From the NCBI GenBank assembly GCA_038087875.1, contig JAXLNO010003819.1:248001-312000 (forward strand): 64,000 nucleotides of DNA, read 5' to 3'. The position numbers were made by a program, and so were the translations under genes. Below are positions 10,151 through 54,499 of this stretch, piece after piece; the stretch's first letter is position 1, and every line of letters begins with the position of its first letter. A model generated the notes under the pieces. The model saw only the letters and a program-made list of their open reading frames with translations, had not been told where the DNA came from and did no database searches. This stretch comes from Malacoraja senta. Its lineage: Eukaryota.

Positions 10151-10214
10151 TAAAATTTTTAATTTTTTAATTTTTAATTTTTTTTTTAAATATTAATTTT
10201 ATTTTTAATTTACT

Positions 10215-19600: not shown

Positions 19601-19605
19601 CATAG

Positions 19606-21470
19606 TAATATAGAAACATAGAAAATAGGTGGAGGAGGAGGCCATTCGGCCCTTCGAGCCATCACCGCCATTCATTGTGTTCATGGCTGATCGTCCCCTA
19701 TCAATAACCCGTGCCTGCCTTTTCCCATATCCCTTGACTCCATTAGCCCCTAGAGCTCTATCCAACTCTCTATTAAATCCATCCAGTGATTTGGCCTCCA
19801 CTGCCCTCTGTGGCAGGGAATTCAATAAATTCACAACTCTCTGGGTGAAAACGGTTTTTCTCACCTCAGTCTTAAATGACCTCCCCTTTATTCTGAGACT
19901 GTGGCCCCTGGTTCTGGACTCGCCCAACATTGGTAATATTTTTCCTGCATCTAGCTTGTCCAGTCCTTTCATAATTTTACATGTTTCTATAAGATGCCGC
20001 CTCATCCTTCGAAACTCCAGTGAATACAAGCCTAGTCTTTTCAATCTTTCCTCATATAACAGTCCCGCCATCCCAGGGATCAATCTGGTGAACCTACGCT
20101 GCACTGCCTCAATCACAAGGATGTCCTTCCTCAAATTTGGAGACCAAAACTGTGCACAATACTCCAGATGTGGTCTCACCAGACCCTATACAACTGCAGA
20201 TGAACCTCTTTACTCCTATACAGAAATCCTCTTGTTATGAATGCCAACATTCCATTAGCTTTCTTCACTGCCTGCTGTACCTGCACGTCAACTTTCAGTG
20301 ACCGGTGCACAAGGACGCCCAGGTCTTGCTGTACCACCCTCTTACCTAACCTAACCCCATTGAGATGATAATCTGCCTCCTTGTTTTTGCCGCCAAAGTG
20401 GATAACATCACATTTATCTATATTATACTGCATCTGCCACGCCTCTGCCCACTCACTCAACCTGTCCATGTCACCCTGCATCCTCCTAACATCCTCTTTA
20501 TAGTTCACACTGCCAACCAGCTTTGTGTCATCCGCAAACTTACTACGTTGCTCCTAATTCCGTCTTCCAAATCATTAATATATATGGTAAACAGTTGCGG
20601 CCCCAACACCGAGTCTTGCCGCACTCCACTCGCCACTGCCTGCCATTATGAAAAGGACCCGGTCACTCCTACTCTTTGCTTCCGGTCTGCCAACCAATTT
20701 TCTATCCATGTCAACACCCTACCCCCAAACCATGTGCTCTAATCTTAGTCACCAGTCTCCCATGCGGGGCCGTATCAAAGGCTTTCTGAAAGTCTAGATA
20801 CACTACATCCAGTTGGATCCCTTCATCCATTTTACTTGCCACATCCTCAAAAAATTCCAGAAGATTAGTCAAGCATGATTTCCCTTTCATAAATCTATTT
20901 TCACTAGGACTAATCCTTTTACTGCTGTCCAAATGCCCCATTATTACCTCTTTAATAATTGACTCCAGCATCTTTCCCACCACCGAAGTCAGGCTAACTG
21001 GTCTGTAATTCCCCGTATTCTCTCTCGCTCTTTTCTTGAAAAGTGGGATAACATTAGCTATCCTCCAATCCACAGGAACTGATCCTGAATCTATTGATCA
21101 TTGGAAAATGATCACCAATGCGTCCACTATTTCTAGAGCCACCTCCCTGAGGACCCTGGGAAGCAGACCATCAGGCCCAGGGGATTTATCTTCCTTCAGT
21201 CCCATTAGCCAACCCAATACTATTTCACGCCTAATGAATATTTCTTTCAGTTGCTCTACCCCCTTAGATCCTCTGTCCTCCAGTACATCTGGGAGATTGT
21301 TTCTGTCTTCCTTAGTAAAGACAAATCCAAAGTACCTGTTCAACTCTTCTTCCATTTCCTTGTGCCCATAATAATTTCACCCGTGTCTGCCTTCAAGGGA
21401 CCCACATTTGACTTTGCTACTATTTTCCCCTTAACATATCTTAAGAAGCTTTTTTTACTGTCCTTCTGTA
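19606..21470 (-). mobile_element. CR1, 3' part of a near-full-length element (19606-~26200)
   Basis: Minus-strand ORFs 19580-20179, 20176-20508, 20711-21073 and 21098-21355 are consecutive ORF2 pieces; (CATAGAAA) tail near 19610. Confidence 0.92.
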
Positions 21471-23372: not shown

Positions 23373-25128
23373 GCTTTCAACAGATTTGACTGCCCCACAC
23401 CACCCCAGTCTCCCCCACCTGGTCTGCTGACCATTGCTGCTTCCTCTCCACCTCCCCTCCCTCTCTCCATCGTCTCCATCACTCCTGAGATGTCACCTGT
23501 GCGGAATCCCCTCTTTCCACCTCCCATTCCACCAGCAGCCCCACCTATGACTCTTCATACTGCTCAGGTCAAGATGATGCTGGACAGACTGAAGCCAGGG
23601 AAAGCAGTGGGGCCTGATGACACCAGCCGAAGACTACTGAAGACCTGCTCTTCAGAGCTGTGTGGTATTGTAACACACCTGTTCAACCTGAGCTTGCGTC
23701 TACAGAAGGTTCCAAGGCTGTGGAAAACATCTTGCCTGGTACCTGTCCCAAAGAAGACCCATCCCACTCACCACAATGACTACAGACCAGTAGCGCTCAC
23801 TTCACGTATTATGAGACATTTGAGAGATTTGTCCTTTCCTACATCAGGACTAGTGTGTCAAATCAAATGGATCCTTTACAGTTTGCATATCAGCCTAACA
23901 ACAGTGTCGATGATGCCCTCATTTACATGCTGCAGAGGGTGTACACACATTTGGACACTACTGATGCATCTGTAAGGATTACGTTTTTTGACTTCTCAAG
24001 CGCCTTCAACACAATTCATCCCCGACTGCTAGTGGAGAAGATGGAGAAGATGAAAGTGGATCCATCACTGGTACTGTGGTGTTTGGATTACCTTTCCCTC
24101 AGACCACAGTACGTGCGCCTACAGAACAACAATGTCTCAAGCACCATCTTGAGCAGCACAGGGGCTCCACAAGGAACTGTGCTGGTTCCATTCCTGTTTA
24201 CCATCTACACAGCGGATCTCCGATATAATACCAACAGCTGCTTTTTGCAGAAATTTTCGGATGACACAGCTGTTGTCGGCCTCATTAAAGGGGGCAATGA
24301 GGAGGAGTATAGAGACATGATAAGTAACTTTGTGGAGTGGAGTGCACCCAATTACCTCCTTCTTAACACCACAAAAACCAAGGAGATAGTTGTGGACTTC
24401 AGGAGGGGAAGGAGAAGGACTCAAGCAACACCAATCACCATTAAGGGCACTGAGGTGGAGGTGGTCGCTAACCACAGGTACCTTGGTGTGCAGCTTGACA
24501 GTGAGCTGGACTGGAAGTGTAATATGGAGGCGGTGTACAGGAAGGGACAAAGCCGACTGTATTTTTTAAGGAGGCTGAGGGCATTTAACATCTGCCAACC
24601 CCTACTGTGCAGTGTCTACCATTCAGTGGTGGCCAGTGCTCTGTTTTTTGCGGTGGCCTGTTGGGGAGATGGCGCCCGCATAGCGGACAAAAACAGGCTG
24701 GACAAGCTGATCAGGAAGGCCGGCTCAGTGGTCGGGGCTGAGCAACGAACGGTCCAGCAGGTGGCAGAGGCCAGAACTCTCAACAAACTGGGTTCTATAA
24801 TGACCAACCCCACTCACCCACTCCATGCCCTGAAGGTGATCAAGAGCAGCATCTTCAGTCAGAGACTGATTGCACCAATGTGCAAAACTGACAGACATAG
24901 GAAGTCCTGTTTACCAGCTGCTATAAGGTTATATAATGCGCATAAATAACTGCACTTTTTTATTCTTTAATTGTATTTTAACTTGTATGTTAACTTGCAT
25001 TTTAACTTGTTAAGTATGGCAGCTATTTGAGGAAATGTGTGGTGTTATGTCTGTCTTGAAGCTGTCGTGGCACTGTAATTTCCTGCAAAGGATTATTAAA
25101 GGTATAATCAATCAATCAATCAATCAAT
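23373..25128 (+). mobile_element. Rex/Babar-like non-LTR element nested in CR1
   Basis: ORFs 23490-23975 and 23855-24949 (frameshift near 23815): KAVGPD, DYRPVALTS, FDFSSAFNTI, GAPQGTVL, FSDD; tail (AATC)n at 25107-25128. Confidence 0.92.
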
Positions 25129-26200
25129 CGAACCTGCCTGCCAGAATGCGGATCCCTCACCTGTTAAGATGCAATCCGTTCCTTTTGTACAGCCCCCCTT
25201 ACTCCAAAACAGATCCCAGTGATCTAAGAATCTAAATCCCTGCCCCCTGCACCAGTTCCTCAGCCACACATTCAGGTCCCGTACCTCCCTGTTTCTGCTC
25301 TCGCCAGCACGAGGAAGTGGAAGCAAACCGGAGATAACAACTCTGGATGTCCTGCTTTTCAGCATTTTTCCGAGCTCTCTAAAGTGACGCTGCAGAATAT
25401 TCATCCCCTTCTTTCCGAGGTCGTTTGTGCTGACATGCACTACCACTTCCGGCTGTTCACCTTCGCCCTTGAGGATTTTCTGCACTCTGTCCGTGACATC
25501 CTGCATCCTGGCACCAGGAAGGCAGCACACCATCCTCGAATCCCGTCTATTGCCGCAGAAACCCCTGTCCGTACCTCTCACAATGGAGTCTCCAACTACA
25601 ATGGCGTTGTCTGACGTTGGCCTCTTTGGATTTGGCTCAACAGCCCTTTTTGCTTCGCAAGCCAGCGCGCCGCTCAGTGTGATAACGTATTCTGTCCCGA
25701 CAGCTTCTAAGTGGGTGAACCTGTTCACAAGATGTACAACACCCGGGGACGTTTGCATTCCATGTTTACCTCCCTTTCTCACCGTCACCCACCTTCTCTC
25801 TTCCAGTACCTTACATGTAACAATCGTACTGTAGGAAAAGGAACGACTCAGTTTCTCGGACGAACCTGAGGTCATCCACTTGCTTCTCCAGTTCCCCAAC
25901 ACTGTCCTTCACGAGCTGTACCTGGATGTACTTCTCACATTTGTAGCAGCGGTGTCCTTGACCTCCCACATACTGAAAGCATCACACTGAATCAGCTTAC
26001 CTGATGTGTCCTTATTTCGTCTCTCCCTCTCCAGCGTTTTGCGTAGCCTCCTCTCCTCAGCCTGCTCGCCGAAGACTCTCGAGGCAAAGACTCACACATT
26101 TCTCACAGGGCACTTCACTCACAAGGCCGCTCACTCACTGCCGCTCCCTAAGAGCCGTCTTGCTTATATTGACTGATAAATTATCTTTGTTGCAGTTGCT
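25129..26200 (-). mobile_element. CR1 ORF1 (zinc-finger/zipper relic + SGNH esterase) and 5' region
   Basis: ORF 25120-25902: IVVGDSIVR, VCCLPGAR, HVSTND, FLDHW; joins 23372 (cagtggcaaac|ctgcctgccag). Confidence 0.9.
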
Positions 26201-30656: not shown

Positions 30657-30694
30657 TGTTTTTGTAAGGGTCTTAACTTGTTTCCATCACTGTG
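30657..30694 (-). other. RSS of V1 (22-nt spacer)
   Basis: CACAGTG (30694-30688) + ATGGAAACAAGTTAAGACCCTT + ACAAAAACA (30665-30657). Confidence 0.95.
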
Positions 30695-31160
30695 AGCCAC
30701 AGTGCGCAGTAATAGACTGCAGAGTCGCTGAGATCCAGCCCTGAGATACTCAAACTGGTGAACTTAGTCGCTGTATTGAGCTCAATAGAGAAACGAGTAT
30801 CAGCGTATTGGGCCTTATCTTCATTGTCGTTGGTGTCTCTCCACATAGTAAACTCGGGCTGCATGCCTGGATATTGTCGGTACCATAATAAAGTATATCC
30901 ACTCCATGTGGTATCATAGTTACAGGTTAAAGTCACCGCTTCTCCTTTTGTCTTCTTCGCCGTGTGCAGTGGCTGTGTGACAGATTCTCCGTGAATCATG
31001 ACTGTAAAATAAATATATTGAGATAGTAACAGACACCGGAGTCTCATGAGATTGCACTTCTCAAAACCTGAATGAGAAAGGCGAGGGGAACTGAAAAATT
31101 TGATCCCGAATTACCTGTCAGAAACGCTCCCCACCCAACACAGATGCCGAGGAAACGCAT
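30695..31160 (-). CDS. TRAV/DV: TCR alpha/delta V segment V1, intact (leader exon 31160-31115, V exon 31001-30695)
   Basis: Leader MRFLGICVGWGAFLT G|gtaatt; 113-nt intron; ...tttacag|. V exon ESVTQP...VTLTC...LLWYRQYPG...RFSIE...LSDSAVYYCALW with Cys23, Trp41 and Cys104 present; RSS follows. Confidence 0.95.
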
Positions 31161-34830: not shown

Positions 34831-36307
34831 CATACTGCCGGAGGAGGTAATTGAGGCAGGTACTGTCGCAACGTTTAAGAAATATTGCTACAGTTACATG
34901 GATAATATATGTTAAGAGGAATATGGGCCAATCGTAGGCAGGTGGGGTGTGCAAATGGGGTACGTTGGGCATCGTGGGCAGGTTGGGCCGGAGGACTATT
35001 TTTCACGCTGCATGACACTAGACCTCTTTGCCAAGATCGAAGAACAAGTCACTTTCCCCTTGTGCAAGGCGCAAGTTTCTGGAGTTAACATCCGAGTCTT
35101 CAACTTTACTCGATCTCTCTTCCTCTTCGTTTGGAAGACAATTCGGCATATCGACGCCTGTCTTGGTTATATTGGCTCTCGCGATAACGTTCAAAATTTT
35201 AAATGTCAACTCACAACATCATTCGCTCCAGAGAAATAATAAATCCTGACCTATACAGTCTCTATCGGAATTGAACGTCTCCAGTCCTGGCAAATTCTTT
35301 GTCATTAATAATCTGCCACTCTCCAGAGTAATGGTATCATTGCTAACATATTGCGATCTGAACAACATTGCACGTGCTGTCTCGCCAACGTCCCAGACCA
35401 GATGGTTATACTCCACTTATATCCAACTGCATGCGACTCCGGAAGTGAAATAAGTCCACACCTTAAGATGGCTGAGGGAAACAATATCCTACAATCCCCA
35501 TACAAATTGAATCGCATTGCATGCAATTCGATTGCTCATGAACAAGATGGAGAAAAAGCCTTGTTTCCGTGCCTTATAACACACAACTACCACGTACAGT
35601 GAGAGTTCGTTCAATATACCTGCCCCTCCCGTGAGGAAGGATTGGCGCTGCGTCCCCTTTAAATATTTACCGTCTCATTTTAAACTCCTGCCCTCTTTTA
35701 GAGACCTAAATCCGAGGAACAAAATTAAATACCTCCACTGATCATCACCTTGTCTTATTTTAACCCTCCATAACTCCCCGTGGTCTTGTTCGTTGCAGAG
35801 GGAAACCTCTGCATTATCAAGTCCATCTCACAATTTACACCGTCCAATATTAGTATCATTCTTGTGAATAGAGTTACATACCGCCTAGTTTAAATGGATC
35901 CTTAATGAATTATTTCGAAAGTAATATCTCTGTTCCTGTGCTGTACTGCTCTGTGAAGTTTTTTTTCAGTGAATTGCTTGGTTTGAGTGCAGCAGACATG
36001 ACACTTCTTTCTTGGGTCAAGACTTTCTTCAGAATGATCTATCCCCAAACATGTACCGCCGGTCAGAGTCTCCTTAACCCAATCAATTAGTTCTATAATC
36101 TTGCACATCAACATTCGTGATATCTCCAAAGGACCAATGCATTGAGAAGATGTCACCCTAATATCTGGAATAACATCAAAAGCTGTTCACCTCTGTGTTT
36201 TATTAATTAACACATTTTTTAAAGATAATCTGTGGATCAAGATTATTTCTAGCCGATGTTTATTTCCAGTCAGTTGTCATGATACACATTATATTTGCCT
36301 ATTCTTT

Positions 36308-36757
36308 CGTATGAAGAAAGACTGGATAGACTCGGCTTATACTCGCTAGAATTTAGGAGATTGAGAGGGGATCTTATAGAAACTTACAAAATTCTAATCG
36401 GGTTGGACAGGCTAGATGCAGGAAGATTGTTCACGATATTGAGGAAGTCCAGGGCAAGGGGTCACATCTTAAGGATAAGGGGGAAATCCTTTAAGACCGA
36501 GATGAGAAAAACATTTTTCACACAGAGAGTGGTGAATCTCTGGAACTCTCTGCCACAGAGGGTAGTTGAGGCCAGTTCACTGGCTATATTTATGAGGGAG
36601 TTAGATGTGGCCCTTGTGGCTAAAGGGATCAGGGGGTATGGAGAGAAGGCAGGTACGGGATACTGAGTTGGATGATCAGCCATGATCATATTGAATGGCG
36701 GTGCAGGCTCGAAGGACCGAATGGCCTACTCCTGCACCTATTTTCTATGTATCTATG
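36308..36757 (+). mobile_element. 5'-truncated young CR1 with 8-nt TSD
   Basis: Near-identical to 13215-13680; TATTCTTT at 36300-36307 and 36758-36765; absent from duplicate copy 1. Confidence 0.92.
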
Positions 36758-37355
36758 TATTCTTTACTTCTTGAAGTGCCAACAGTTGAAAGATATCAAT
36801 GCTGCTGTTGTAACTGAATTGTGTACGATGTCGTCTAGAAGGTTCCCTGTGACTTACATAATTTAGACCCTGCCCAAGAATGATTATCTTTCCTTTTGAA
36901 TGGGAGCTGCACAGAAAATCCAAGATCTAATTATTAATGGTTGCATGTTAAGTGAATGGAACGGTGTCTGGAAAATGCATTACAAATGCTACAAATAAAA
37001 TACTGCATTACATCGCAGCATGTGTGGATAAATGCTAAATGACACGTATTTTGCTGCATCTTCGTGTCAAGCGTTTAAATTTAAAAATAGAATGTGCAGT
37101 CGTATCTTACATTTCCCTTGTGCGGTTGGTACTCAGCTGGTGCCTGAGTAGCGAGCGATCGCATAATGAGTTTGATCGCTTTGCATCACCTGGGAGCAAC
37201 CTATTTGTTCAACGGTCCACAACGGATGTCCGCGGGGAGGTGAACGCACGCTGTCCTTCACTTTTTTCCAGGAATATAAATATATAGCGGTTTGACTTCT
37301 CACTTTGACTTCTGTAAGTTTTGAACGGCATAACTGGGGACGGCTTGACGGAGAA

Positions 37356-39874
37356 ATGAGTTGGAAGTGGCACTTGGACGTTGAATATTATTATTATCAA
37401 ATTCTAGCAGCAATCGGAGTACCCGGTAGGTCAAGGGAACGCTGTATGTGGGACTGAGATGTGGGATGCTGTGTTGATAAAGTCAATGGTAAAGGTAAAG
37501 TGAAAATAGTGTGCGAAAAACGGGAAGGCTCGACTGCATCCTTCGGGTTACGGCGGTATTAACTAGAAAATGTTAATCTCCTTGATCGTTGGTCGTTCAT
37601 TGGATCTGGTACAGGTTGATTCTCTTCAGATTCAGGTTTAAGTGCATTGTTGTCTTGTCTCCCTGGGAGTTGCAAAAAAAAGCTTTGGTTTGCAAGCAAT
37701 CCAATCAGATCAAATATTATTATATACCAATATAAACAATTCAATATCAGCAAAAGGTAGTGTAAAAGGAGAAATCGGAGTGCAGAGCATAGTTCAAGTT
37801 TGGTAGCGCATAAACTCCAATGTCCGCAAGGGGATATAGGTGAATCGGCAACACCCTAGTATATGAATAAACGGCTCAGAAGCCTGACAACAGAGGGGAT
37901 GATGCAGTTCTGGAGTCTGGTGGTGCGAGCTTTCAACCTTCTGTATCTTCTGCCCGACGGGAGTTGGAAATAGAAGGAATGCTCGGGGTGACACATGTCT
38001 TTGCACATGTCGCCTCCGTATCCCAGGCATTGTGAAGTGCAAATGCAGTCAACAGTACGGAGTCAACATCGTGATATGGGACACGGCTTCATCCAGAACT
38101 ACCTGCAATGAATTGTTTATAAGGCAGAGATGTCCCCACAACAAGCTGTGATACACCCAACAGTATGCTTTCAATGCTAATCTGTAGCAGAATGTTTGAG
38201 TCATTAGATGCAGGTCAGAGTTCCTCAGTCTTCTCAGTAAAGGTGTTGGTCTGGATATCGGAGAGAGATATTAATGAGATATTAACTGCGATGAACTTGA
38301 GGTCCTCAACCACTTCCACTTGAGCACCATTGATGGTGACCGGTGATCCACCGCTTTTCCGGAAATCGATAACAAACTCCTTCGTCTTGTTGACACTGAC
38401 GTTGAGATTGTTATTATCTGGAAACTTGTGGGAGCAGAAACAGACGAATTTGGCCGCGGGGTCGTGAGTGTAGAGGGTGTAGACGGGTACGGAGCAAACA
38501 TCTTTATATGGCACAGTTGTAAGAATTATTGTGGAAGGGGTGTTATCACAAATTCTCGCTGGTGTACTGATCGCTAGGTTCGGGAGTTTATCAATGGGTT
38601 TGAATGGGAGTAGTATCGAAGGCAAGTTCTCCAGCGGAGAAATGGGAATCTAACTTTCGACTCCTTCCTGCCTGGCTGTTCCAGAGAAGAGGTTAGGTCC
38701 AGGACGATGGTGTCTGATGCGGACATGTTGCTGCAATATGCAGTCTGTGGTGCATCAAGGGTGGCTGGGAGACAGCTCACGCTGCCTGCGTATACCGCCG
38801 CTAGCTAATCCGCACAGCTCCTTAGCACGCACCCAGGTTTGCAAGTGGGCCAGCTGTTTTCGAACAAATAAGCAAAGCGTACCTATAATTGACCCCGCCT
38901 CCAAATTAGCATCGCGTTTCCTTACATGTAACGACAGTTTCCTCTTTTCTACTCACCCAGTGAACTTGCTGGCGATTGTGATCCTGTCCCGCAGAAATTG
39001 TGGTCTCTCCAAATGCACCACTCGTTACCTGGTGGCCATGGCGACGGCGGACCTCTCAGTGATAGTCTGCGAAGTGATATTACATCGGATTGCCGACCTT
39101 TACTGGGTGGACACATTCCTCTTCCACAATACTGTGTGCAGGTGCATTATGTTCCTCGCCCCCGCGGCCGTAGCCTGTTCGGTTTGGCTCACGGTCGCTT
39201 TCACATTTGATCGCTTTGTGGCCATTTCCACTCAGAATCTGAGAACCAGATACTGCACCGAAAGAACCGCGGTGGTGGTTATAGTGACCCTAACTGCATT
39301 CTTCTGTATACAGAACGCGCCCTGGCCGTTTGCGTACACTTATTATCTCAGGGATCAGCAGGGTATACTGTGGGGTTGCCGAATACGATTTCACTTTTAT
39401 ATCCTATCCTCGTGGATAGCATTTTCCTGGACTCAACAGCTGCTAATCCCAGTCATTCCGTTTTGTTTGATTATGCTGATGAACGTGCTCACTGTCAGAC
39501 GCATTTTAGTGGCCAGTCGTGTCCGCAGAATACTCCGCGATCTCAGTAGTGAGGACCCCGAGATCGCAAACCGCAGACGGTCCGTAATTTTACTCCTTGC
39601 AATCTCCAGCAGTTTTATGCTGCTCTGGGGCACAAATGTGGCATATTTCGTTTACTATCGATGTACGAACGCATTTTGGTTCAGGGGGTTGAAGAACCGA
39701 TTTGCAACATTTGAACAAACTGGAATTATGCTACAATTGTTGAACACCTGCACAAACACGCTCATTTACACCGTGACCCAGAGGAGGTTCAGAGAGCAGC
39801 TGCTCCAGGTACTCAAGTGCCCCTTCACCCTAACTGTAAGTTTAATAAAATCTAGAAAACCTGGTGTAAAATAA
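37356..39874 (+). CDS. GPR139-like class A GPCR, intact two-exon gene (37356-37425, 38961-39874; 327 aa)
   Basis: Exon 1 MSWKWHLDVEYYYYQILAAIGVP G|gtaggt; acceptor cacccag|TG gives V-N-L in frame. Seven hydrophobic segments, DRF, NTLIY; phase-1 intron in TM1 as in GPR139. The start codon may lie further upstream. Confidence 0.88.
37780..38500 (-). mobile_element. Rex/Babar-like fragments in the GPCR intron
   Basis: ORF 38215-38625: NNNLNVSVNKTKEFVIDFRK...VEVVEDLKF. Confidence 0.75.
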
Positions 39875-41859
39875 CATTACAATACTAATCCTTTCGTGAG
39901 TGAGTGCAAAAACTAGATAATGAAGAAGTTTAATCTGAAATCTTTCCGCATCAATTAAAAAAAATAGCTGAGAAATACAATCTGAACGCGTCCCCTGCGC
40001 TGGAATGCACATTTGGCCATCTATTTAACATGCGACACGGGCGCGTTGTTCAAAGTGTCCAGTGGGGAGGGCGGCCATGTGGAACCGAGTGCTATGTTGT
40101 ACTGGAGCAGACCTCCAATGATTCCGGAATTGAACCTCGCCGTTTACTGTTTCCACCTTCCTTTAAATCCAGCGGCAACGTCTCCAGCACCTAATGAAAA
40201 CAGACATAGAGTTATGGTCCTAAACATTGCATCCTCCATTAATCTACTCTTTTTGAGACGTTCCATGGTTACGTATGTAAGTGCCCAGTGCACAAATGTG
40301 TTTAATAAAATTCTTGCTGCAACATTTACGTTAATGAGAGTTCGATTTTATTTTTGCTTCTCGCACTGAATGTAATGCCTCATTGCTTCTTACAGAGGCT
40401 TTCGGTTTTCATCACAATTATTAACTCTGGACTAGATGCAGCCAAAGGTAGTGGGTGCTATTCATACAAGTTGGCATTACTAATTGTATTTTTAATGGAA
40501 GCAGAGTGTAACAAGCGAGTTCCAGTAGAGGGCGGTAAAGTGAGTAAATCACCTGTGTGGTCAAGAGATTCTGAATCGATTTGCATTAATGTCCCACCTC
40601 CATTGATGCAGCGCCGACGCTGGAGCTCTGCCGAGGCGAAGTAGCTAAATTCGGCGTACAAGTACATATCTGTTTCGAGCAGTTGCATCGTATGCATCAT
40701 TTACAGCTCTCATTGTAAGCATCACGGAGAGGAAGTAGTTCAAAGGATTGCTTCTCCGGCTCGAGAGCATTTCTTGTCGGGTAGGCGACGTATCGGCTGT
40801 TTAGTTATCTGCAGCACAAAAAATGGAGAATGATGAACTAACATTTTATCGAAATATAAACTGATAACTAAAGTATTTTTGGGACAAAATTAGTTTTCCT
40901 TCAGTTGTTTGTGCCAGTTTTGATATCAATTGGGATCAGTATCCATTTGTGACGTGGCGCCACCTTCCATAGCAATCTTTTCTGAACTTGATTGGCCAAC
41001 AAACCCTCCATCCGTTGAATCCAGCCGCCACGCCTCCAACTGAATGGCAATTGCTCTACTCTTCCGGTCCTCGTCTCTTCCCCCTCATCAAACCATTCTT
41101 CTCTAAAACCATCTCTGATTGCTCATGTAAGTACTCAGGTTACAAATCTGCTTGATATAATGAGATTACAATGTACATTAAAGATTCAGTCTTCACCCGT
41201 TGCATCCAACGGTAGCGGATGGTGTTTATTCAAGCAAGGGAAACATTTTTTTTGGAAGCAGACTCCAGTAGTCGGGGCGGTAAAGCGAGAAGGTTCGCTT
41301 TTCTGATTGGTCAAAGTTGCAAATTGGTCTGACATGTATCTCCCAAGCCACTACCAAAGCGCAGACGCTGCAACTCCGCAGTGGCAAAGAGAGTAGAATT
41401 AAAACAAGAGGAAAACGCTCGAAAGGAAGCTTCTCAGATACGAGTGCATCTCGGGTAGGACTCCGCAGTTGGGCAGACATTGAGAAAAATGGAGAAGGCT
41501 TCCAATTAAAATGTAACTGATTACGAAAAATAAGGGAACTTTCAGCTGTTTTTGCCAGCTAAGATACTCATGAGGATCAAGGTTGATTGGTGACTTTTGA
41601 CTTGGCGGCAACTTCGGCACAAATCTTTCCATAACATAATTTACAATCCTCCATACTTTGAATGCAACAGCCAAGCCTTCAGCTCTCAATGCCAATAGGT
41701 CCACAATTCCGTTCTTCAACCGTTCCATGCCCATCACTCTTTTCTTTTTGATGCCATCCATGATTTTATATGTAAGTACCCAGACCACAATACTTGATAA
41801 CCTACTTTTAGACTGCTTCTCCCACATTCGTGCAATAATATGTATATACGCACATATAT

Positions 41860-43220
41860 TTCATTTGGAGATACAGCGCGGAAACAGGCTCCTCGGCACA
41901 CGGAGTCCGCGTTGACCAGCGATTCCCGCACACTAACACTATCATACACACTGGGGATAATTTAGCATTTTTACCGAAACCAATTAACCTACAAACCGAT
42001 ACGTCTTTGGGGTATTCGAGGAAACCGGAGCACCCGCATAAAAACCTACGGGGAGAATGGACAACGGGTCACGCGGATAACGGACATACTCCGTGCAGGT
42101 AACTACTAGGTATGTTACAAAACTTACCTTCAGTCGTGCTGTAATTCTGCCACTGGCCGTGTGCGCGATTTTGGCGCCTTTAAGGGGGGGCGGGGATAAA
42201 ACGCTGGTTTCTCCTCCCTTGTCCTGGTTAATATTTTGTTGGAGTGCAAGCGTTGGCTGAACAATCGTTCCTAGTGGCCTTTTGTGTATTTTTTATTTTT
42301 ATTAAATCGTCAATGTCAGCGCTAGAGTAATTTTAAAATCAGCTCCTGAAGCGTCAACGCCGATAACGGGGACGGATTTCACACACGGGACAGGTAAACG
42401 AAAGTGGTTTCTTTAAATGTATAAAAGTGCTTCTTAAGAAGCCTTTAATTCACATTTTTTCATGCGACACGGTGATTTTATTCCCCGAATTAACGGCAGT
42501 ATTTTTCATGCCAATACGGGGTTAAATTCACCGCAAATGAACGTTCCAAAAGATCGCGTTCCAGAAATCCTCCCTAACAAGATTATTTAAATCTGTATTA
42601 ATTTACAGGTATTAAACATTCAATTCCTTCCATTTGGCCTGTAAATTCATGAAAATGAGATTTACAAATTATGTTATATTGTGAATTATTGTGTGAATGT
42701 TATTTGGACACTTAGGCTATTTAAAAATGTTAATCTATTCTTAAGAAATTGATAGATGTTTAGATCTAGTAATTGAATTTTGTAATTAGCTACAATTAGG
42801 TAACTAACTAATTATATGCTTTACTTTCATGTCTTCTAAGTAAGATTGTTTCATATTTGTTTCAGAATGCTTCAATCTATAATAACTGAAAATTTCTTTC
42901 AGTTATCTTAATATTTAAGAAAGTTATGGGCTTTTAACTGTCCTCGATCACAGCTTTTGTGTTAAGTCAATGGAAAAGCAATAGGGAACAAGATGCTAAT
43001 TTCCGAGTATGAAAATGGCAATAATTTCTGTAATACTGAAGATATGAAAGTGAATTAGGTGTCAAATTAAACTTTTTTTTATGCTTTATCTGATGGGATA
43101 AATTGCAGACTTTATTTTTAAAATCTCAAAATTTTGTAACATTGCTACAACTACAGTGGTCAGGATCAAATCCGGCTCTCTGGCGGTTTAGGACAGCATC
43201 ACTACCGCTGCGGCACCTCT
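41860..43220 (-). mobile_element. SINE split by a DNA element (SINE parts 41860-42100 and 43149-43220)
   Basis: gatacagcgcggaaacagg...actccgtgcag on the left resumes as ...gtggtcaggatcaaatccggctctctggcg on the right. Confidence 0.7.
42107..43148. mobile_element. Non-autonomous TIR DNA transposon, ~1.04 kb
   Basis: Inverted termini ATGTTACAAAA (42112-42122) and TTTTGTAACAT (43132-43142); AACTAC flanks both sides (42101-42106, 43149-43154); no ORF. Confidence 0.7.
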
Positions 43221-43299
43221 GCGGGTTTGATAGTAAACAATGTTATCGAAAGATTTGTGCAGAAGGTGATGCCAAGTGACAAGTCATAAATCAACCCTG

Positions 43300-43460
43300 A
43301 TCGTAAATACTAATATATATAAACATAAATATTAAAATATATGAATACATATAAAAATAATTGTTATAATAATATATACAAATATTATGATATATACAAC
43401 TAATGTTATAATTTGTATATTATTATTATATTTACTTTAATATATATATATTTAAATGGA
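43300..43460. repeat. AT-rich low-complexity (TA)n region
   Basis: Almost pure A/T sequence. Confidence 0.8.
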
Positions 43461-44044
43461 TAGAGAGATTAACAGAGGACATTGCATCAGGCGTTAAACA
43501 GATTTGAATGCGCTTGGCGGAATGTCACAATTCTAGAATCGCTTTGGCATTACGAGAACGCACAGAAGGAAGAGCAGTTCTCACCAAAGTATGTGGAGGC
43601 TTCTCAGAACCGCTGACAAGAGATCACTTCAAAAACTTCCAGTAGACTCAGTAGATGTTTTTCTCGCATAGAAGGCGGAATGTTGCTCGAAAGTAAATAT
43701 CTGAATTGCTCTCTGGGTATTACTTTCCCAGATTTAAACCAATCCCTGCTTGCTTTGGTTTGCAATTGCAAAACAACTCACTTCCCAAATGATCTTCCGT
43801 TGCCCATGGACCGACCCTTTACCCAACCGTCCATTTACTGTTCTCTATTGAGTCCTCCCTATATCTTTGCAATTTCTGAGCATAACGCTTTTCCTACAAT
43901 GTACGCTCTATTCGTTAACAATTTCAACCAAAGACTTAATTTTAAGCACACAAATCACACGAGATGACCGTTAGTGGGAATAGGCGTAACTGTACGTTCT
44001 CAGCAATGGTCTCTCCAACGTGCATCACTTTCCAATGAGGACGA

Positions 44045-44700
44045 TAGAAACATAGAAAATAGGTGCAGGAAGAGGGCAATCGGCCCTTCGAGCCAACACC
44101 GCCATTCATTGTGATCATGGCTGATCGTCCCCTATCAATAACCCGTGCCTGCCTTCTCCCCATATCCCTTGATTCCACCAGCCCCAAGAGCTCTCTCTAA
44201 CTCTCTCATAAATCCATCCAGTGACTTGGCCTCCACTACCCTCTGTGGTAGGGAATTCCACAAATTCACAACTCTCTGGGTGAAAAAGTTTTTTCTCACC
44301 TCAGTCTTAAATGACTTCCCCTTTATTCTGAGACTGTGGCCCCTGGTTCTGGACTCGCCCAACATTGGGAACATTTTTCCTGCATCTAGCTTATCCAGTC
44401 CTTTTATGATTTTATATGTTTCTATAAGATCCTCTCTCATCCTTCTAAACTACAGTGAATACAAGCCTGGTATTTTCAATCTGTCCTCATATGACTGTCA
44501 CGCCATCCCAGGGATCAATCTCGTGAACCTACGCTGCACTACCTCAATCACAAGGAAGTCCATCCCCAAATTTGGCGACCAAAACTGGACACAATACTCC
44601 GGACGTGGTCTCACCAGAACCCTATACAACTGCAGGAGAACCTCTTTACTCCTATACTGAAATCCTCTTGTTATGAAGGCCAACATTCCATTAGCTTTCT
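44045..44700 (-). mobile_element. CR1 3' fragment
   Basis: ORFs 44135-44440 and 44498-44719 (minus); (CATAGAAA) tail. Confidence 0.9.
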
Positions 44701-45405
44701 TGTAATTGTAAAGCAGCATATCCGGTTCCTTGTTGCTGCAGATGCAACAGCTGATTTTACACCTGCTCTATTCCCACAATTCATGCCAATTCAAATATGT
44801 TGGGAACCATACGAGGTTGGGGGCGATGAACGGGCAAGGAGAACGTACATACATTTAATATTTCAGGTAAAGGATGTGGGGTACTTCATGTTGGGAGAAT
44901 GGTTCCACAGTGGATAGAAACTAGGGAGGGATTTGGATGAGGAGGGGCGGGTGGGAGTTACGTGGAAACAGCCCCATCGAGTCAACACCGCCACCGATTA
45001 CCCGTTCACAACCATTTCCATGTTATCTCAGTTTCGCACGACTCTCTACAAACGAGGGGGAATTTACAGAGGGCTGATCAACCTACAAACCCGCATGCCT
45101 TTAGGACGTGTGCGCAAACCGGGACACCCGGAGTTAACATACGCATTCTCCTGGAGATTGCCCAGCAGCACCCGAGTTCAGGATCACACACGTGTATCTG
45201 GAGCTGTCAGGTAGCAGCTCTACCAGCCGCGCCACTGTGCCTCATCTTGTGTATTCCACTAATAGTGGGCGATTTCCTTCGGCTGCTCCAGTGTCTTCCC
45301 AAGTAGGCGATAATCTATCTGACATTGCCGGATGGAAAGTAGGATCATCAGTAGGAGTTGATTACCAGTTGAAAGATAGAGAGTTACAAAAGTAAGTGAC
45401 AAGTA

Positions 45406-46232
45406 GCCTGCAAAATCGGCTTTCTCCTCGTTTCCTATTGAATATTTCTTCCATATGAACTCGGGCCTTGAGACCTGATGATGCCGGTAACAATATAAGT
45501 AGTAGCGCGTTTCTGCGGTCTCATAGGTGCAGCTGAAAGTCACCGACTCTCCTTCTACCTTCTGTGCTGACGGCAGCGATTGTGTGACGATATCTCCATG
45601 ATTGGGATCTGAAAAAATATATGGATTATGTTTAGGTTTGTCATGCGTGCACGAAAATACGCGGAAGGCCTTTGTATTATATGCTAGCAAACAGATCAAC
45701 TGATAACATACATAAATACAATCAAGTCAAACGCACGTTCAACAGATAGATAAAGGGAAGATAGAGAGTGCAAAATAAAGTTAATATTATTGTAGCCAAT
45801 CAGTCCCAGAGACAAAGGCCAATGTCGACACTGGGGTAGATATGCATCGCATAGCTCCCTTGCATATCGAAGAGAATCGAACATTGCCGCGGCTTATAGG
45901 TAGGAAGGAACTGGAGATGCTGACTTAAACCGAAGTTAGACACGAAAAGCTGGAGTAACTCAGCGGGACAGCCAGCCTCACTTGACAAAAGGAATAGGTG
46001 ACCTGAAGAAGGGTCTCGACCCGAAACATTACCTATACCAATTCATTTTCTCCATGGCACATGGATGGCAATTAGATAGGACCGGCTTTCCATTTACATA
46101 TAGGGAAAGATTAGAGCGGTTCGCATTCACAATGATGGTCGACGTTCCGTCGGAGCAAGTAGCCGGATTAACTGCTGCGACTTTACCTATCAGGCATGCT
46201 CCCCACACAATCCAAATGGTAAATACGCGCAT
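45406..46232 (-). pseudogene. TRAV/DV: TCR alpha/delta V segment V2, 3'-truncated pseudogene (leader 46232-46187, V exon from 45608)
   Basis: Leader MRVFTIWIVWGACLI G|gtaaag; DIVTQSLP...VTFSC; Trp41 replaced by Cys (YLYCYRH). Homology to V4 stops after KADFAG at 45406; no Cys104 and no RSS. Confidence 0.9.
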
Positions 46233-47128: not shown

Positions 47129-48062
47129 GCCACTGAGCTATATGGTGAGGATGAGGTGGCTAGGACTTTATTCCATGATGCGCATGGTGATGAAGGGTGT
47201 ACAAAATCATGAGAGGAGTAGATCGGGAAAACGTACAGAGTCACTTGCCCCGTATAGGGGAATAGAGAATCAGATGATACATGTTTAAAGTGTGTGTGTG
47301 TGTGTGGTGGGAATTTCATAGGAACCAGAGGGGTAAATTGTTTACACAAACGGTGGTGGGTGTCTGGATCGAGCTGCCGGTGTAGGTAGTTGAGGCAGGT
47401 ACTATCGTAACATTTAGACAGGTACATGGAAAGGATAGACATGGAGGAATATGGGCCAAGCGCAGCCTGGTGGGATTAATGTAGATGGGACATATTGGTC
47501 GGTGTGGGCAGGTTGGGCCGAAGAGCCCGTTCCCATGCTGTATGACTCTCTGAGTCTGACTTGGAGAAATCCGCCCTACCATCCCCCTGTTTCCCCTTCC
47601 CATTCCCCGCTTAGGTACCATCGCATTCTCTCACCATCTTGTACCCGAATTCCCTTTGTCCATTAAAATAATGCTTTATTTTACTGTTTCTCTTCATACC
47701 TGACAATAATAAACCAAACTAAAGTAAACTTGACTTAACGGAACTGAACTGAATTGAATTAAACTAAACTTAATGAAATTCACAGACATGATCTGGGAAA
47801 CGTTCAATGTACAATCACTTTCAGGTATATACGTGTCGTAACGTTAGCTCATCATTTAACACCAAGCTCCTTGGGTAACACTATTTTGCTTTTATTGCTT
47901 CAGATTTTCCCTTATAAGTGCAGTGACTCCATCGCAGCTGATCCGTCAACAGATGGGACCCACCCCGCTCACCGCTATTGGAGAGCCAACGGAGGCACGG
48001 GGCAACAACGAGGGAGCGCTCTGTTTGCCGACGGCATATCGACAACTCAGCTGATAGACACC

Positions 48063-48528
48063 ATGTGGTTCCTCATTAACTGGATGGCGTGGGGAACATT
48101 TTTGATAAGTAATAGTGACACACATGCATTTCTTTTCTCTTTTACTTGTGAAACAGGGTATGAATCTCAGACTTTAAATCTCGCAGGTCTGATCATTTTT
48201 TTCCGTTTGGATCTATTTTTACAGATCACGGCCGTGGAGATTCTGTCACTCAGTCGCCGCCATTAGCAGTGAAGACAGAAGGAGAAGCAGTGACGTTGGA
48301 ATGCAGATACAAAACCACGGGTTCCTACAGTATATAATGGTATCGACAGATGCCCGGCTCAGAGTCCGAGTACACTTTACGGAAAGACAGCGATGGCAAT
48401 GAATGGAAGGCGGACTTTGCTATTGGTCATTTCTCTGTCGAACACCGCACCGGGAGTAAATTCATCAGTTAGACCATCTCAGATCTGGAGCTGAGCGATT
48501 CTGCAGTTTATCACTGCACGTTGAGCCG
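48063..48528 (+). pseudogene. TRAV/DV: TCR alpha/delta V segment V3, pseudogene (leader 48063-48108, V exon 48225-48528)
   Basis: Paralog of V5; TAA at 48335-48337 and TAG at 48470-48472; YYC changed to YHC. Confidence 0.93.
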
Positions 48529-48566
48529 CACAATGGTGGGAGTCAGTATACACCCGTACAGAAACA
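48529..48566 (+). other. RSS of V3 (22-nt spacer, variant heptamer)
   Basis: CACAATG + GTGGGAGTCAGTATACACCCGT + ACAGAAACA. Confidence 0.85.
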
Positions 48567-48892
48567 CAAGGCGCCTTGTGGTTCGGGTTGGAATCAAATG
48601 CAAGCCTCACACGGGTTCCTGTTCGCGGTTTCCTGTCATTCTGAGAATTGTTTCTAAAGTCGTTTTTGGTACGATTTGCGCAGGTGCGACGGTGTCTTGC
48701 TGAGATCTGTCATCCCTGTATCTCTTCCTTCCGTTAGTGGTCCCTGTTCTTTTCTATTCTTTGCTCCGTCTCTCACTCTCTTTACCACAGCTTCGAAATC
48801 AAAGTCTCGCAGCTTCCCAGCTTCTCAAAAAACGCGGTATTTGGAATGTTCCTTGTTCTGTTCGGATTCCGAATTTCTTCATCAAAGTCTCG

Positions 48893-51800
48893 CAGCAATA
48901 TGAAGTGTCACATATCGTTCTTCAAGTAGAGGAGCGTCTTGGCGTTCAAATCTTCATCTCAATCTCGGATTCCATGCCTTTCTCTTAACATCTCCTCTGT
49001 GCCATTTTACAAAGCTCTTGCCCACATATCGCTCCTACTCGTGCCTTGGCCCTTATCTCCGTTCAGCCCCTGACAAAGCTCGATTGTTATAATATTATTA
49101 TCAGTGGCATTAGTTGTATGAATGTTGCAAGATAATTCATTGAATTAATTGTGAAATTCTTGTCACTGTTATTTTGAAGAGCGCGCGCCGGTGTGGAAAT
49201 CTTTGGCGAATTGATGCCGATCTTTATCATTCTCGCAGAACATTCTTGTTCCCGATATTCAACCCGACGTTGTTCACCCCAAGCTCTGCCTCAACGATTA
49301 CTGTATTCAGATAAATTATACCGCACATCCAACAGTAGCAGTGCCCCCAATCTCGACTCTGTAGATGTGGGATTAGACGGAGTATTTGGCAAATAAGCTT
49401 GCAGTGTAGTTACCCGATTGACCAACTAACCGGGATACACGCCTGTGTACACTGTGATTGACGATCCATTCCATCTAAAACAATAAAATACCAGGTTATT
49501 CTGCCGATCACTTATTTTCGCAGCTGAGTCCAGGCAGATCAATAATATTCGAACATTTTAAGACACGCCCTCAATTTCCAGAAATATGTCCAATTTAACG
49601 AAGAGGTTTTTATGTAGCAACGTGTCTTTATTTGAACTAAAGATAATTTTCATCTTGCTTGTTTCGCTTCGTTATGTCGGAATTAGGATCGTGCTAAGCG
49701 ATTATTCCGTATATATTACCCTTTCTACCAGAACAGCCTTCCACTCTTGAAAGCAATCAGAAATTGATACAATTCCGTGTAAATCGGGCCAAACTTTATT
49801 TATTCCAGGGAAGAGAACACGGCTGACAATTTCGCAATGCGTTCTTCATTTTCTGGTTTCCTTATGATGCAGCAGCTATTACATTTGCCTTGCGCTAATG
49901 AAAACATTGTATTGCATTAGAGGCAAGTCACAAATGACTAGAGATGCTGGAATGTGCAGCAAAAATAAAATGATGTGTTGGAGGAACTCAACGGCGATTG
50001 CCAGACAATGTACAAAAAAATGGAATGCGTGAGACGAGATGTAATACACGAACGGTGAATCCCCACCTGCGGATTAGTGGATGGACTCTCGTGAGGGGGA
50101 GACGGATGTAGATAATGGCAGGGCTTGGTAGGATGCCTGTTTCTTCGTTGTCCATATGGAGCATCCTTTGTTCCAAAAACATTCTCGCAAATTTCCCCAT
50201 TCGGCATCCCCATTTAGTTCATTCGAAAAATAAATTGAATTTAGTTTAGTTTAGAGATACAGCGCAGAAACAGGTCCCTCGGCCCATCGAGACCGCACCG
50301 ACCAGCGAGCCCCCACACACACGAGCGACAATTCACACTTACACTAAGGCAATTAACCTACATGCCTGAACGCCACAGATCTCGGAGAAAACCCACGAGG
50401 TCACGGCGAGAACGTACAAACTCCGTACACACTGCACCCGTAGTCGGGATCGAACTCGGGTCTACGGCACCCGAAGTGCTGTTAGGCAGCAACTCTACTG
50501 CTGCGCCACCGTGGCCGCCCGGAATTTAATTTGGTTGGATTGGAATGGTGGGCAGGATAAATAATTCACGCGAATGCTTTGCGGTTTGGGAGCACACAGT
50601 GAATGCTGGTATATGAACGCAACGCATTTTTCGCGGGGAATAATAAAGATAGGCACCAAGTCACCAACGATTTCCACGGTAAAACAAAACCATCAAAATA
50701 ACAAAATGGCCTTCTCCTCCTTCAATAAACTGTGATCTGGTAAATGTTTGATGAAGCGAGGAGAGGAGCTCATCATTGAAACTGGAGATGAACAACCATT
50801 GAAACAATTTGCAGCAATATGAAGTGTGACATTTCGTTGTTCAAGTAGAGGAGCGTCTTGGCGTTCAAATCTTCATCTCAATCTCGGATTCCATGCCTTT
50901 CTCTTAACATCTCCTCTGTGCCATTTTACAAAGCTCTTGCCCACATATCGCTCCAACTCGTGCCTTGGCCCTTATCTCCGTTCAGTCCCTGATAAAGCTC
51001 GATTGTTATAATATTATTATCAGTGGCATTAGTTTTATGAATGTTGCAAGATAATTCATTGAATTAATTGTGGAATTCTTGTCACTGTTATTTTGAAGAG
51101 CGCGCGCCGGTGTGGAAATATTTGGCGACTTGATGCCGATCTTTATCATTCTCGCAGAACATTCTTGTTCCCGATATTCAACCCGACGTTGTTCACCCCA
51201 AGCTCTGCCTCGACGATTACTGTATTCAGGTAAATTATACCGCACATCCAACAGTAGCAGTGCCCCCAAGCTCGACTGTGTAGATCTGTGATCAGTCGGA
51301 GTATTTGGCAAATAAGCTTGCAGTGTAGTTACCCGATTGACCAAATAACCGGGATACACGCCTGTGTACACTATGATTGACGATCCATTCCATCTATAAC
51401 AATAAAATATCAGGTTATTCTGCCGATCACTTATTTTCGCAGCTGAGTCCAGGCAGATCAATAACATTCGAACATTTTATGACACGCCTACAATTTCCAG
51501 AAAGATATCCAATTTAACGAAGAGATTTTTATGTAGCAACGTGTTTTTATTTGAAATAAAGATAATTTTCATCTTGCTTGTTTCGCTTCGTTATGTCGGA
51601 ATTAGGATCGTGCTAAGCGTTTATTCCGTATATGTTACCCTTTCTACCAGAACAGCCTTCTACTCTTGAAAGCAATCAGAAATTGATCCAATTAAGTGTA
51701 AATCAGGCCAAACTTTATTTATTCCAGGGAGGAGAACACGGCTGACAATTTCGCAATGCGTTGTTCATTTTCTGGTTTCCTTATGATGCAGCAGATATTA

Positions 51801-52130
51801 CATTTGCCTTGCGCTAATGAAAACATTGTATTGCATTAGAGGCAAATTACAAATGACTAGAGATGCTGGAATGTGCAGCAAAAATAAAATTATGTGTTGG
51901 AGGAACTCAACGCCGTCTGCCAGACATTGTACAAAAAATGGAATGCGTGAGACGAGATGTAATACACGAACGGTGAATCCCCACCTGCGGATTAGTGGAT
52001 GGACTCTGGTGAGGGGGAGACGGATATAGATAATGGCAGGGCTTGGTAGGATGTCTGTTTCTTCATTGTCCATATGGAGCATCCTTTGTTCCAAAAACAT
52101 TCTCGCATATTTCCCCATTCGGCATCCCCT
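48893..52130. repeat. Local tandem duplication, period ~1918 nt (C1 48893-50210, D 50211-50810, C2 50811-52130); further copy at 60410-62340
   Basis: gcagcaatatgaagtg...ccccattcggc occurs at 48893, 50811 and 61021; repeated ORFs 49988, 51798 and 62115 (MGK.ARM.LEQRMLHMDNEET). Confidence 0.9.
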
Positions 52131-53319
52131 GCGCGGGCTACGGCTTGTGGACTGCCTCTTGGAACCATGCAGTACAGGCTAATATTATTAACTTCGCCAC
52201 TTACGTCCGCCCTGGCCTCAAATTGACTTGAACCACTTTGCCCGTCCTATTTCCTAATCGTTTTGTCTCTCACTCACCCGGTGCTTACACCGAATCAACA
52301 GATGAGGAGTGAATTAATCAGCGGCAAAAACATAAAACCATTTGCTGGAGCTGTGTCCACTTGAACCCTGTTGGGACCAGTATCCTGGCAAACTGCACAA
52401 CGAGGGCGGTAGGAAGTGTCAATATGAGTTTTTGCAAACAAATAGAGGAGGCACGCAGGATCACGTGATGTGTTGTAGGTTACACAGTCTCACTTCGTCA
52501 TCGTTTCCGCTCATTGAGCCCTTTCCTTTTGACGACCACGGATGGATTCGGGGGCCGGTGTTGTTGCATGGTTGACCCCACCTCAGAAATAGGAGCCGCG
52601 CCAGGCTTCCGCGGTGCTATCAATGAGCAAGTGTGGAATCGCTCTCCTATTGTCCGCGGCTGCGATGACGTTGGCAATAACGCACTGGATGTACTGCGCT
52701 CAGCTGCAATGAGCAAACATTGCATTCCCCAATCGAGCAGAATATCGCCAATGCAGGGAGCACACAGATGAAGAAGATTATGTTTATCCTCGTCGCCAAT
52801 CAGCGATACATTTTCATTCTCGGTATCATTCAAAATCGCACTAAAGTTTCTGTTTGTTAACTCCCCCCAGCTAAAAATGATATTCGACATTTCCTTGATC
52901 TATCGTTTTCACACCTTACCCTTCCATATCTCTAGTCTCCCTCTCCCCTGACTCCCAATATCGACCCGTAACGTCACCCATCTTCTCTCCGTAAATGCCT
53001 CCTGTCCCGATGTTACACCAGCATTTTGTTTCTATCTTCGGCAGGGTACGACAAGATTTAACTCCATAGGGCAGAGTACAGGCCGGTGCACATCTGCCGC
53101 ATTGTGGACATTGGGATTTGATTCTGGAATTGATGCGCTACAATGTGGAGAACTTTATCCTGCACTCTGTATCTTTCCCTTTGCTCTATCTATTGCACTT
53201 CGGTTTGAATGGGTTGTATTTATGGACCGTTATCTGATCTGCTGGCTAGTATGCAAAGCATAATTTATCACTGTATCTCTGACCATTATAAATCTAAACC
53301 CAACCCATGTGTTTTCCAG

Positions 53320-53529: not shown

Positions 53530-53568
53530 TGTTTTTGTAGGAAGGTTCCACTTGTTTCCATCACTGTG
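53530..53568 (-). other. RSS of V4 (23-nt spacer)
   Basis: CACAGTG (53568-53562) + ATGGAAACAAGTGGAACCTTCCT + ACAAAAACA (53538-53530). Confidence 0.95.
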
Positions 53569-54499
53569 AGGCTCAGGGCGCAGTAATAAACTGCAGAGTC
53601 GCTCAGCTCCAGCCCCGATAGGGTTAAACTGACTAATTTTCTATCGGTCTGGAGCTGGGCAGAGAAGCGAGCGCCTGCAAAATCGGCTTTCTCCTCGGTT
53701 CCACTATAATATTTATACAGTATGAACTCGGGCCTTGAGTCCCGATGATGCCGGTACCAAAATAAGAAGTAGCTCGTTTCTGCGGTATCATAGGTGCAGC
53801 TGAAAGTCATCGACTGTCCTTCTACCTTCTGTGCTGACGGCAGCGATTGTGTGACGGTATCTCCATGATTGGGATCTGAAAAAAAAGGATTAGATTTAGG
53901 TTTGTTATGCGTGCATCAAATATACGCAAAAGACCTTTGTATTACATGCTACCCAAACAGATCAACTGATAATATACTTCAATACAATCAAACCAAACGC
54001 GCGTTCAATAGGTAGATAAAGGGGAAATAGCAAGTGCAGAATAAAGTTCATATTATTGTAGCGAATCAGTTCCAGAGACAAAGGCTAATGTCGACACTGG
54101 GGTAGATATGCATCGCATAACTCCCTTGCATATCGAGGTGAATCTAGCATTGCCGCGGCTGAGAGGTAGTAAGGAACTTCAGATTCTGACTTAAACCGAA
54201 GTTAGACACGGAAAGCTGGAGTAACTCAGTGGGTCACCCTGCTTCTCTTGGCAAAAGGAATAGGTGACCTGAAGAAGGGTATCGACCCGAAACATGACCT
54301 ATTTCAATTCATTTTCTCCATGGCATGTGGATGTCGATTAAATAGTACCCGGCTTTCCATTTACATATAGGGAAATATTAGTCCGGTTCGCATTCACAAT
54401 GATGGTCGATGACCGGTCGGAGTAAGTAGTATGATTAACTGCTGCGACTTTACCTATCAGGCATGCTCCCCACACAATCCAAATGGCAAATATGCACAT
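53569..54499 (-). CDS. TRAV/DV: TCR alpha/delta V segment V4, intact (leader 54499-54454, V exon 53875-53569)
   Basis: MCIFAIWIVWGACLI G|gtaaag; DTVTQSLP...MTFSC...LFWYRH...RFSAQL...LELSDSAVYYCALS; RSS follows. Confidence 0.95.

Follow-up and report, generated by a model that had tools for sequence, protein, structure and literature searches.

What is an intact G-protein-coupled receptor (GPCR) gene doing among the variable (V) gene segments of a T-cell receptor (TCR) array, and does its position matter to either system? This question is raised by a 64,000-nucleotide (nt) stretch of the genome of the skate Malacoraja senta (GenBank assembly GCA_038087875.1, contig JAXLNO010003819.1, positions 248,001 to 312,000 of the forward strand), the whole of which is called the window here and is numbered from its first letter. 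An earlier note, made from the letters alone, had described the gene as a complete GPR139-like receptor embedded between V segments of TCR alpha/delta type. Our examination revealed that the gene is intact, that it has close kin in a large receptor family, that its clade is linked to V segments in other species as well, and that it has been held under constraint. Reading these results jointly, we suggest with a probability of about 0.75 that the gene encodes an intact, constrained GPCR of a clade resident in the array, which has duplicated as a passenger together with the V segments, has its own promoter and senses something other than L-Trp or L-Phe.

The gene is formed by two exons, and its parts in the window are as follows.

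37275-37281, plus strand: TATAAAT box, a putative core promoter about 75 nt 5' of the start codon.
37356-37425, plus strand: exon 1, with the ATG at 37356 and the donor GT at 37426 (GTAGGT); 23 codons plus 1 nt, covering the N-terminus and the first half of transmembrane helix 1 (TM1).
37426-38960, plus strand: intron of 1535 nt, with a minus-strand retroelement fragment inside (open reading frame (ORF) 38215-38625).
38961-39874, plus strand: exon 2, preceded by a pyrimidine-rich tract and the acceptor AG at 38959-38960; it covers the rest of TM1 through to helix 8 and the stop codon.
39954-40309, plus strand: candidate poly(A) signals from a pattern scan, ATTAAA at 39954 and AATAAA at 40304.

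The spliced frame is 984 nt long and encodes 327 amino acids (aa) with no stops and no frameshifts, and the product matches the Pfam 7tm_1 profile over its full span (positions 2-260 of 260; E=7.9e-15; score 55.5 bits, cutoff 30.5), in agreement with the complete 327-aa receptor that had been proposed. Most of the class A microswitches are in place, namely N1.50, D2.50, DRF, the cysteine pair between C3.25 and extracellular loop 2, P5.50, W6.48, N7.49 and Y7.53, while the prolines P6.50 and P7.50 are both replaced by T; both replacements are family-wide, and the one in TM7 is common to GPR139. An AlphaFold2 model of the exon-2 product was obtained with a mean predicted local distance difference test score (pLDDT) of 81.4 and a predicted template-modelling score (pTM) of 0.77, and Foldseek gave template-modelling scores of 0.65-0.76 to CCKAR, GHSR, GALR and GPR139, a fold comparison that does not separate GPR139 from other peptide-type class A receptors. 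The window gene is thus an intact two-exon class A GPCR gene.

A single-exon ORF of 385 aa (38717-39874) was rejected in favor of the two-exon model for three reasons. First, the exon-1 peptide (MSWKWHLDVEYYYY...GVP, 23 aa) recurs, with the same donor and intron position, upstream of relatives in Leucoraja and Amblyraja, and its identity is 70-91% in the copies of the Amblyraja locus L001 and the Leucoraja locus L002. Second, exon 1 supplies the half of TM1 that the single-exon product lacks. Third, conservation between the two copies of the gene in the window, the second of which is described below, is poor in front of the acceptor (87.6% identity, compared with 95.1% for the exon). We also rejected the Logan contig behind the relative P0001 as a messenger RNA, as it is colinear with genomic DNA including the intron sequence.

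Upstream of the gene, the TATAAAT box is unchanged in five skate copies (the window gene, two copies of Leucoraja and two of Amblyraja) at a coding synonymous divergence (dS) from Amblyraja of about 0.5, and blocks 5' of the box are likewise conserved among the skate copies. The receptor gene is most likely transcribed independently, from this conserved TATA promoter of its own.

The surroundings of the gene contain five V-set exons, three of which are intact with a recombination signal sequence (RSS) of the 23 type, while two are dead.

30657-31160, minus strand: functional-looking V segment, with the leader at 31160-31115, the V exon at 31001-30695 and a 23-type RSS at 30694-30657.
45406-45561, minus strand: truncated V pseudogene, consisting of the 5' half of the V exon without an RSS; it is copied from the V at 53.6 kb and breaks off at 45406.
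48269-48538, plus strand: V pseudogene, interrupted by two stops and with its heptamer mutated to CACAATG.
53556-53828, minus strand: intact V exon, with CACAGTG, a 23-nt spacer and ACAAAAACA; Pfam V-set E=4.6e-17.
58779-59048, plus strand, opposite to the V at 53.6 kb: intact V exon with an RSS; Pfam V-set E=3.6e-18.

The combination of a split leader, a V-set exon with YYC at its end and an RSS of the 23 type was found at 30.7, 53.6 and 58.8 kb, and the segments at 45.4 and 48.3 kb lack it. The RSS of the 30.7 kb segment consists of CACAGTG, a 22/23-nt spacer and ACAAAAACA, and this V shares 88.7% aa identity with a V of the Leucoraja contig L002. The GPCR gene had been placed inside the array between a first V at 31 kb and a second at 45 kb; the gene does lie inside the array, but the second V is the truncated pseudogene, and the functional-looking segments on its two sides are those at 30.7 and 53.6 kb.

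Queries with the V exons alone, against PDB and Atlas, did not separate TCR from immunoglobulin (Ig) light-chain V domains, and the matches of the 30.7 kb V among named proteins were mostly unnamed Ig-like proteins. A region-restricted search admitting full-length chains identified a 282-aa rearranged chain (P0315, UniParc UPI000011ADDF) in which the V shares 90% identity with that at 53.6 kb. Downstream of the V, this chain contains a long complementarity-determining region 3, an FGGGTKL motif resembling a joining (J) segment, and then a constant (C) region, which matches human TCR delta C over the full length, whereas TCR alpha C matches the transmembrane part only. Since the chain joins a 90%-identical V to a C region of TCR delta type, the V family is apparently used in a TCR delta chain, and the label of a TCR alpha/delta V array, which had been given on the letters alone, is supported.

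Within the array, we also observed that a unit of about 5 kb carrying a plus-strand V is duplicated (47716-52857 and 58223-63087, at a spacing of about 10.2-10.5 kb and about 90% identity), and the V is dead in one copy and intact in the other. An internal 1.9-kb tandem repeat lies at 48.9-52.1 kb, inside the unit at 47716-52857.

The receptor belongs to a very large family. More than 1200 proteins reached E<=1e-5 in a word-index search with the receptor; nearly all of the 120 matches listed are labelled "probable G-protein coupled receptor 139" and come from skates, rays, sharks and one chimaera, and those listed are spread over many chromosomes and scaffolds. An exhaustive protein search gave 97 clusters (50% identity) at E<=1e-30. 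In a maximum-likelihood tree of 71 proteins, the window gene falls in a batoid clade (SH-aLRT 99) nested in an elasmobranch clade (99), within which separate duplication bursts occurred in each lineage, and it shares 63-85% identity with those batoid proteins of its clade that are annotated (P0002-P0004, P0013, P0014). The number of matches, the lineage-specific bursts and a dead sister copy in the window all bear out the duplicating GPCR family that had been postulated.

Is the linkage of this gene to V segments peculiar to one assembly? When we surveyed the DNA around eleven relatives for V segments within 10 kb, V segments were found next to members of the clade in Leucoraja (L002 and L008), in Amblyraja (L005, on CM021368.1 around 102.97 Mb, and L007, on CM021380.1 around 58.3 Mb) and in the sawfish Pristis (L006), so that the synteny check in other chondrichthyans, which the earlier note had called for, came out in favor of the linkage in these batoids. 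The Leucoraja erinacea locus (L002, GCA_028641065.1) follows the window colinearly over 29.8-40.6 kb (84-91% identity) and keeps the order GPCR unit, V, GPCR unit. No V was found within 10 kb of another Leucoraja family member (L009), which lies outside the clade with 51% identity. The embedding could in principle be an assembly artefact that joined GPCR repeats to V repeats, as the region is rich in repeats and many relatives sit on small unplaced scaffolds. However, the window contains no N runs, the same order is colinear in L. erinacea, and V segments adjoin relatives in the chromosome-level assemblies of Amblyraja and Pristis, and hence the misassembly that had been kept in mind from the start is scarcely credible. 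As for the concern that such genes are simply scattered over the genome with no enrichment at TCR loci, the scattering over many chromosomes is real but one clade is linked to V segments. Based on these comparisons, one subfamily, and not the whole family, appears to reside in the V array, and the residence of this clade there probably goes back at least to the ancestor that skates and sawfish share. The layout looks like two duplicating gene families sharing the same ground, and it is common to other skates and the sawfish.

Two further observations concern the Amblyraja and Leucoraja loci. In Amblyraja radiata, V segments and GPCRs of the clade occur on two chromosomes, at about 102.87-102.98 Mb of CM021368.1 (L001 and L005) and at about 58.33 Mb of CM021380.1 (L007 and P0316); the V most like the V at 53.6 kb belongs to CM021380.1, and the nearest GPCR orthologues belong to CM021368.1. 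Short V domains also occur next to GPCRs of this clade (L007:22907-23140 and L007:7083-7289, both on the minus strand; L008:1262-1468, minus strand; L005:6647-6850, plus strand, with a stop), and shark VNAR domains are the only solved structures that match them over their full length. They are presumably V domains of NAR-TCR, which are peculiar to the TCR delta chain of cartilaginous fish. No VNAR-like short V domain was found in the window.

The window itself records a duplication of the receptor gene.

8389-20265, plus strand: duplication unit A, carrying the dead sister GPCR and broken by insertions of long interspersed nuclear elements (LINEs) at about 10.2-16.4 kb.
34842-44701, plus strand: duplication unit B, carrying the intact GPCR, with 86-91% identity to unit A in a BLAST of the window against itself.
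16804-17693, plus strand: GPCR pseudogene (copy A), exon 2 only, with a 21-nt deletion and a frameshifting 4-nt deletion.

No exon 1 was found for copy A, and it was lost where the LINEs inserted. The two copies are 95.1% identical in exon 2, 87.6% in the intron and 93.1% in the 3' flank. Since the two copies separated, the intact gene has acquired three synonymous changes and one nonsynonymous change, and the dead copy six and ten, respectively, plus its two deletions. The nonsynonymous counts of 1 and 10 differ with a one-sided binomial P of about 0.006. Because the dead sister copy gained ten times more amino-acid changes, the intact copy appears to be under constraint. When the intact gene is paired with its Amblyraja orthologue (dS 0.51), the ratio of nonsynonymous to synonymous divergence (dN/dS) is 0.36, and with closer copies it is 0.39-0.53, below the value near 1 that the earlier note had named as a warning sign, and this would correspond to moderate purifying selection as in receptor families with fast turnover.

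A young duplicate could also be intact merely for want of time to decay, being unexpressed and without function, and we need to consider this explanation here, since the sister copy is already dead and the terminal branch of the intact copy carries four substitutions only. The two copies are equally old, however, and yet the amino-acid changes and deletions fell on the dead one; the coding sequence is better conserved than the intron, the promoter and the splice sites are conserved down to Amblyraja, and the dN/dS values are those given above. We therefore regard a functionless young duplicate as unlikely. In an intact copy of Leucoraja (P0002, L002:9896-10834), we counted 19 nonsynonymous and 6 synonymous lineage-specific changes, a ratio of the near-neutral or positively selected kind.

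Which receptor is it? Among solved receptors, human GPR139 is the best relative of the single sequence, at E=7e-7, 32 bits and about 25% identity. When a profile of 38 family members was compared with solved class A receptors, a set without GPR142, GPR139 scored 71.5 bits (6e-19) and CCR5, the next one, 48.5 bits (5.6e-12). Because the profile sets GPR139 clear of the other receptors, the family most probably sits in the neighborhood of GPR139 and closer to it than to the other solved class A receptors. The skate receptor and the human orphan receptor GPR139 (PDB 7vug and 9m42) have the class A fold in common, as well as the TM7 motif LLNTxxNxxxY without the usual proline, while the skate P6.50 is T. 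The gene structures also look alike, with an intron dividing TM1 directly behind "G(L/V)P" in GPR139 as well. The two differ, however, in their style of evolution, in that GPR139 is a single conserved brain gene and the skate receptor is one of hundreds of copies with fast turnover.

The receptor might accordingly be suspected to be the true counterpart of GPR139 and a sensor of aromatic amino acids, and the best solved match and the shared TM7 motif speak for this. According to mutagenesis (PMC5430874), GPR139 requires F109, H187, W241 and N271 in order to be activated by L-Trp, L-Phe and surrogate agonists, and for R244, a residue predicted to belong to the pocket, the mutants were no longer expressed at the surface and were not assayable (PMC5430874). 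In a HMMER alignment, which at this low identity is anchored on DRY, P5.50, W6.48 and the TM7 motif, the skate receptor has P in place of F109, Q in place of H187, I in place of N271 and N in place of R244, and only W241 is kept, which is the generic W6.48. With three of the four activation residues replaced, L-Trp or L-Phe is not expected to be the ligand, contrary to what had been supposed by analogy with GPR139. In addition, the nearest relatives outside cartilaginous fish form a distinct subtype, as described below. On these grounds a GPR139 counterpart is very improbable, and the window receptor does not appear to be an orthologue of GPR139. The description as GPR139-like is right in so far as GPR139 is the nearest solved relative, but it overstates a kinship of about 25% identity and 32 bits in which the pocket residues are replaced.

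The nearest relatives outside cartilaginous fish are single genes of the coelacanth, of salamanders and of a teleost, with 29-31% identity and scores of 80-101 bits. Those tested against human GPR139, from the coelacanth and salamanders, reach only 53-70 bits; on this comparison the tested proteins are not likely to be GPR139 orthologues either. The coelacanth protein P0261, the Odontesthes protein P0272 and the salamander proteins P0275 are all annotated as "probable GPR139", and they are nearer to the shark and ray family than GPR139 is. The coelacanth (XP_005988539.1), salamander (e.g. XP_069092602.1) and teleost genes have few copies, in contrast to the large expansion of the skate family. 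We read the cartilaginous-fish family as a separate GPR139-related subtype, with a low copy number in bony vertebrates and a great expansion in cartilaginous fish. This subtype, with P0261, P0272 and P0275, is apparently missing from amniotes. It may correspond to groups that have been put forward under the names "GPR210A/B" on the basis of genes of coelacanth, gar and fish (PMC6504862).

How, then, did a receptor of this kind come to stay among V segments? We suggest that the V segments turn over by segmental duplication and subsequent decay, that the clade multiplies inside the array through these same events, and that the receptor would be a passenger of the array, whose location is a historical accident kept by co-duplication. 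Its product is most likely a seven-helix sensor of an extracellular ligand other than L-Trp or L-Phe, and the gene is probably independent of TCR regulation. Since the family shows birth-and-death dynamics, a diversified sensory, chemoreceptor-like role is our best guess.

The link to the TCR locus could instead be a functional one, in which thymocytes or T cells regulate the receptor jointly with the V array, or the accessibility of V segments is shaped by the promoter of the receptor gene, and selection keeps the two together. The persistence of the linkage between the clade and V segments in Leucoraja, Amblyraja and Pristis would fit such a link, and so would the conserved sequence next to the promoter. 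Inertia in a tandemly duplicating array, however, already predicts conserved linkage; the receptor gene has a TATA promoter of its own, the GPCR and V copies in the window decay independently of each other, and most of the family is located elsewhere in the genome. A functional link is accordingly improbable to our judgement. V(D)J joining does bear on the gene in another way. As the V orientations are mixed, the topology of the RSSs suggests that V-to-J-C joining in cis would affect the gene differently from case to case: use of a V beyond the gene in the same orientation would excise the gene on a circle, and use of a V beyond it in the opposite orientation would invert the gene. If the receptors acted in T cells, such deletions and inversions would give each clone a different complement of receptor genes, a variant of the coupling idea that we find just as doubtful. 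The only positive evidence for a functional tie to T cells is the linkage, and we place little belief in such a tie.

Returning to the constrained passenger receptor that we prefer, several points weigh against it and account for the probability that we assigned. First, the Amblyraja locus L001 has no V within 10 kb, its nearest end being about 66 kb from that of L005, and neither do the loci L004 and L010 of the shark Heptranchias, which belong to the wider clade, so that linkage beyond batoids is unproven. Second, the A/B duplication, as seen in the self-BLAST, contains no V segment in the window. Third, with four substitutions on the branch of the intact copy, the openness of its frame says little by itself, and gene conversion among the copies could mimic slow evolution. 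Finally, the dynamics of the family are the sole ground for our guess at a sensory role.

The arrangement has a parallel in mammals. Genes for olfactory receptors are scattered among TRAV1 and TRAV2 of the TRA/TRD locus in human, mouse and sheep (PMC4574546), which documents for these two V segments the adjacency that the earlier note had mentioned. In both cases, unrelated class A GPCR genes stand between alpha/delta V segments. The mammalian loci, however, contain two or three olfactory receptors at the 5' edge only, whereas the skate array contains a different GPCR family, which is met with repeatedly along the array and shares in its duplication and decay. Among the searchable papers, we found none on this chondrichthyan receptor family or on its location in the TCR array, and a 2025 paper on the elasmobranch TCR alpha-delta and Ig heavy-chain loci does not mention GPCRs. 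GPCR genes inside an alpha/delta V array thus do not seem to be peculiar to mammals, and in rays and skates a different family would have been carried for long by the duplications of the array, which is relevant to the annotation of TCR alpha/delta loci and to models of V-array expansion. Cartilaginous fishes have very small repertoires of classical odorant receptors. This undescribed receptor family is present in them in hundreds of copies, and its ligands and sites of expression are worth a survey of tissues.

The LINE remnants in the window contain endonuclease and reverse-transcriptase domains and lie at 10970-12898 (plus strand), 13837-15828 (minus strand), 23855-24946 (plus strand) and 25123-25902 (minus strand). 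One ORF of these remnants encodes a domain like GDSL lipase and OSK, of a type found in some LINE ORF1 proteins.

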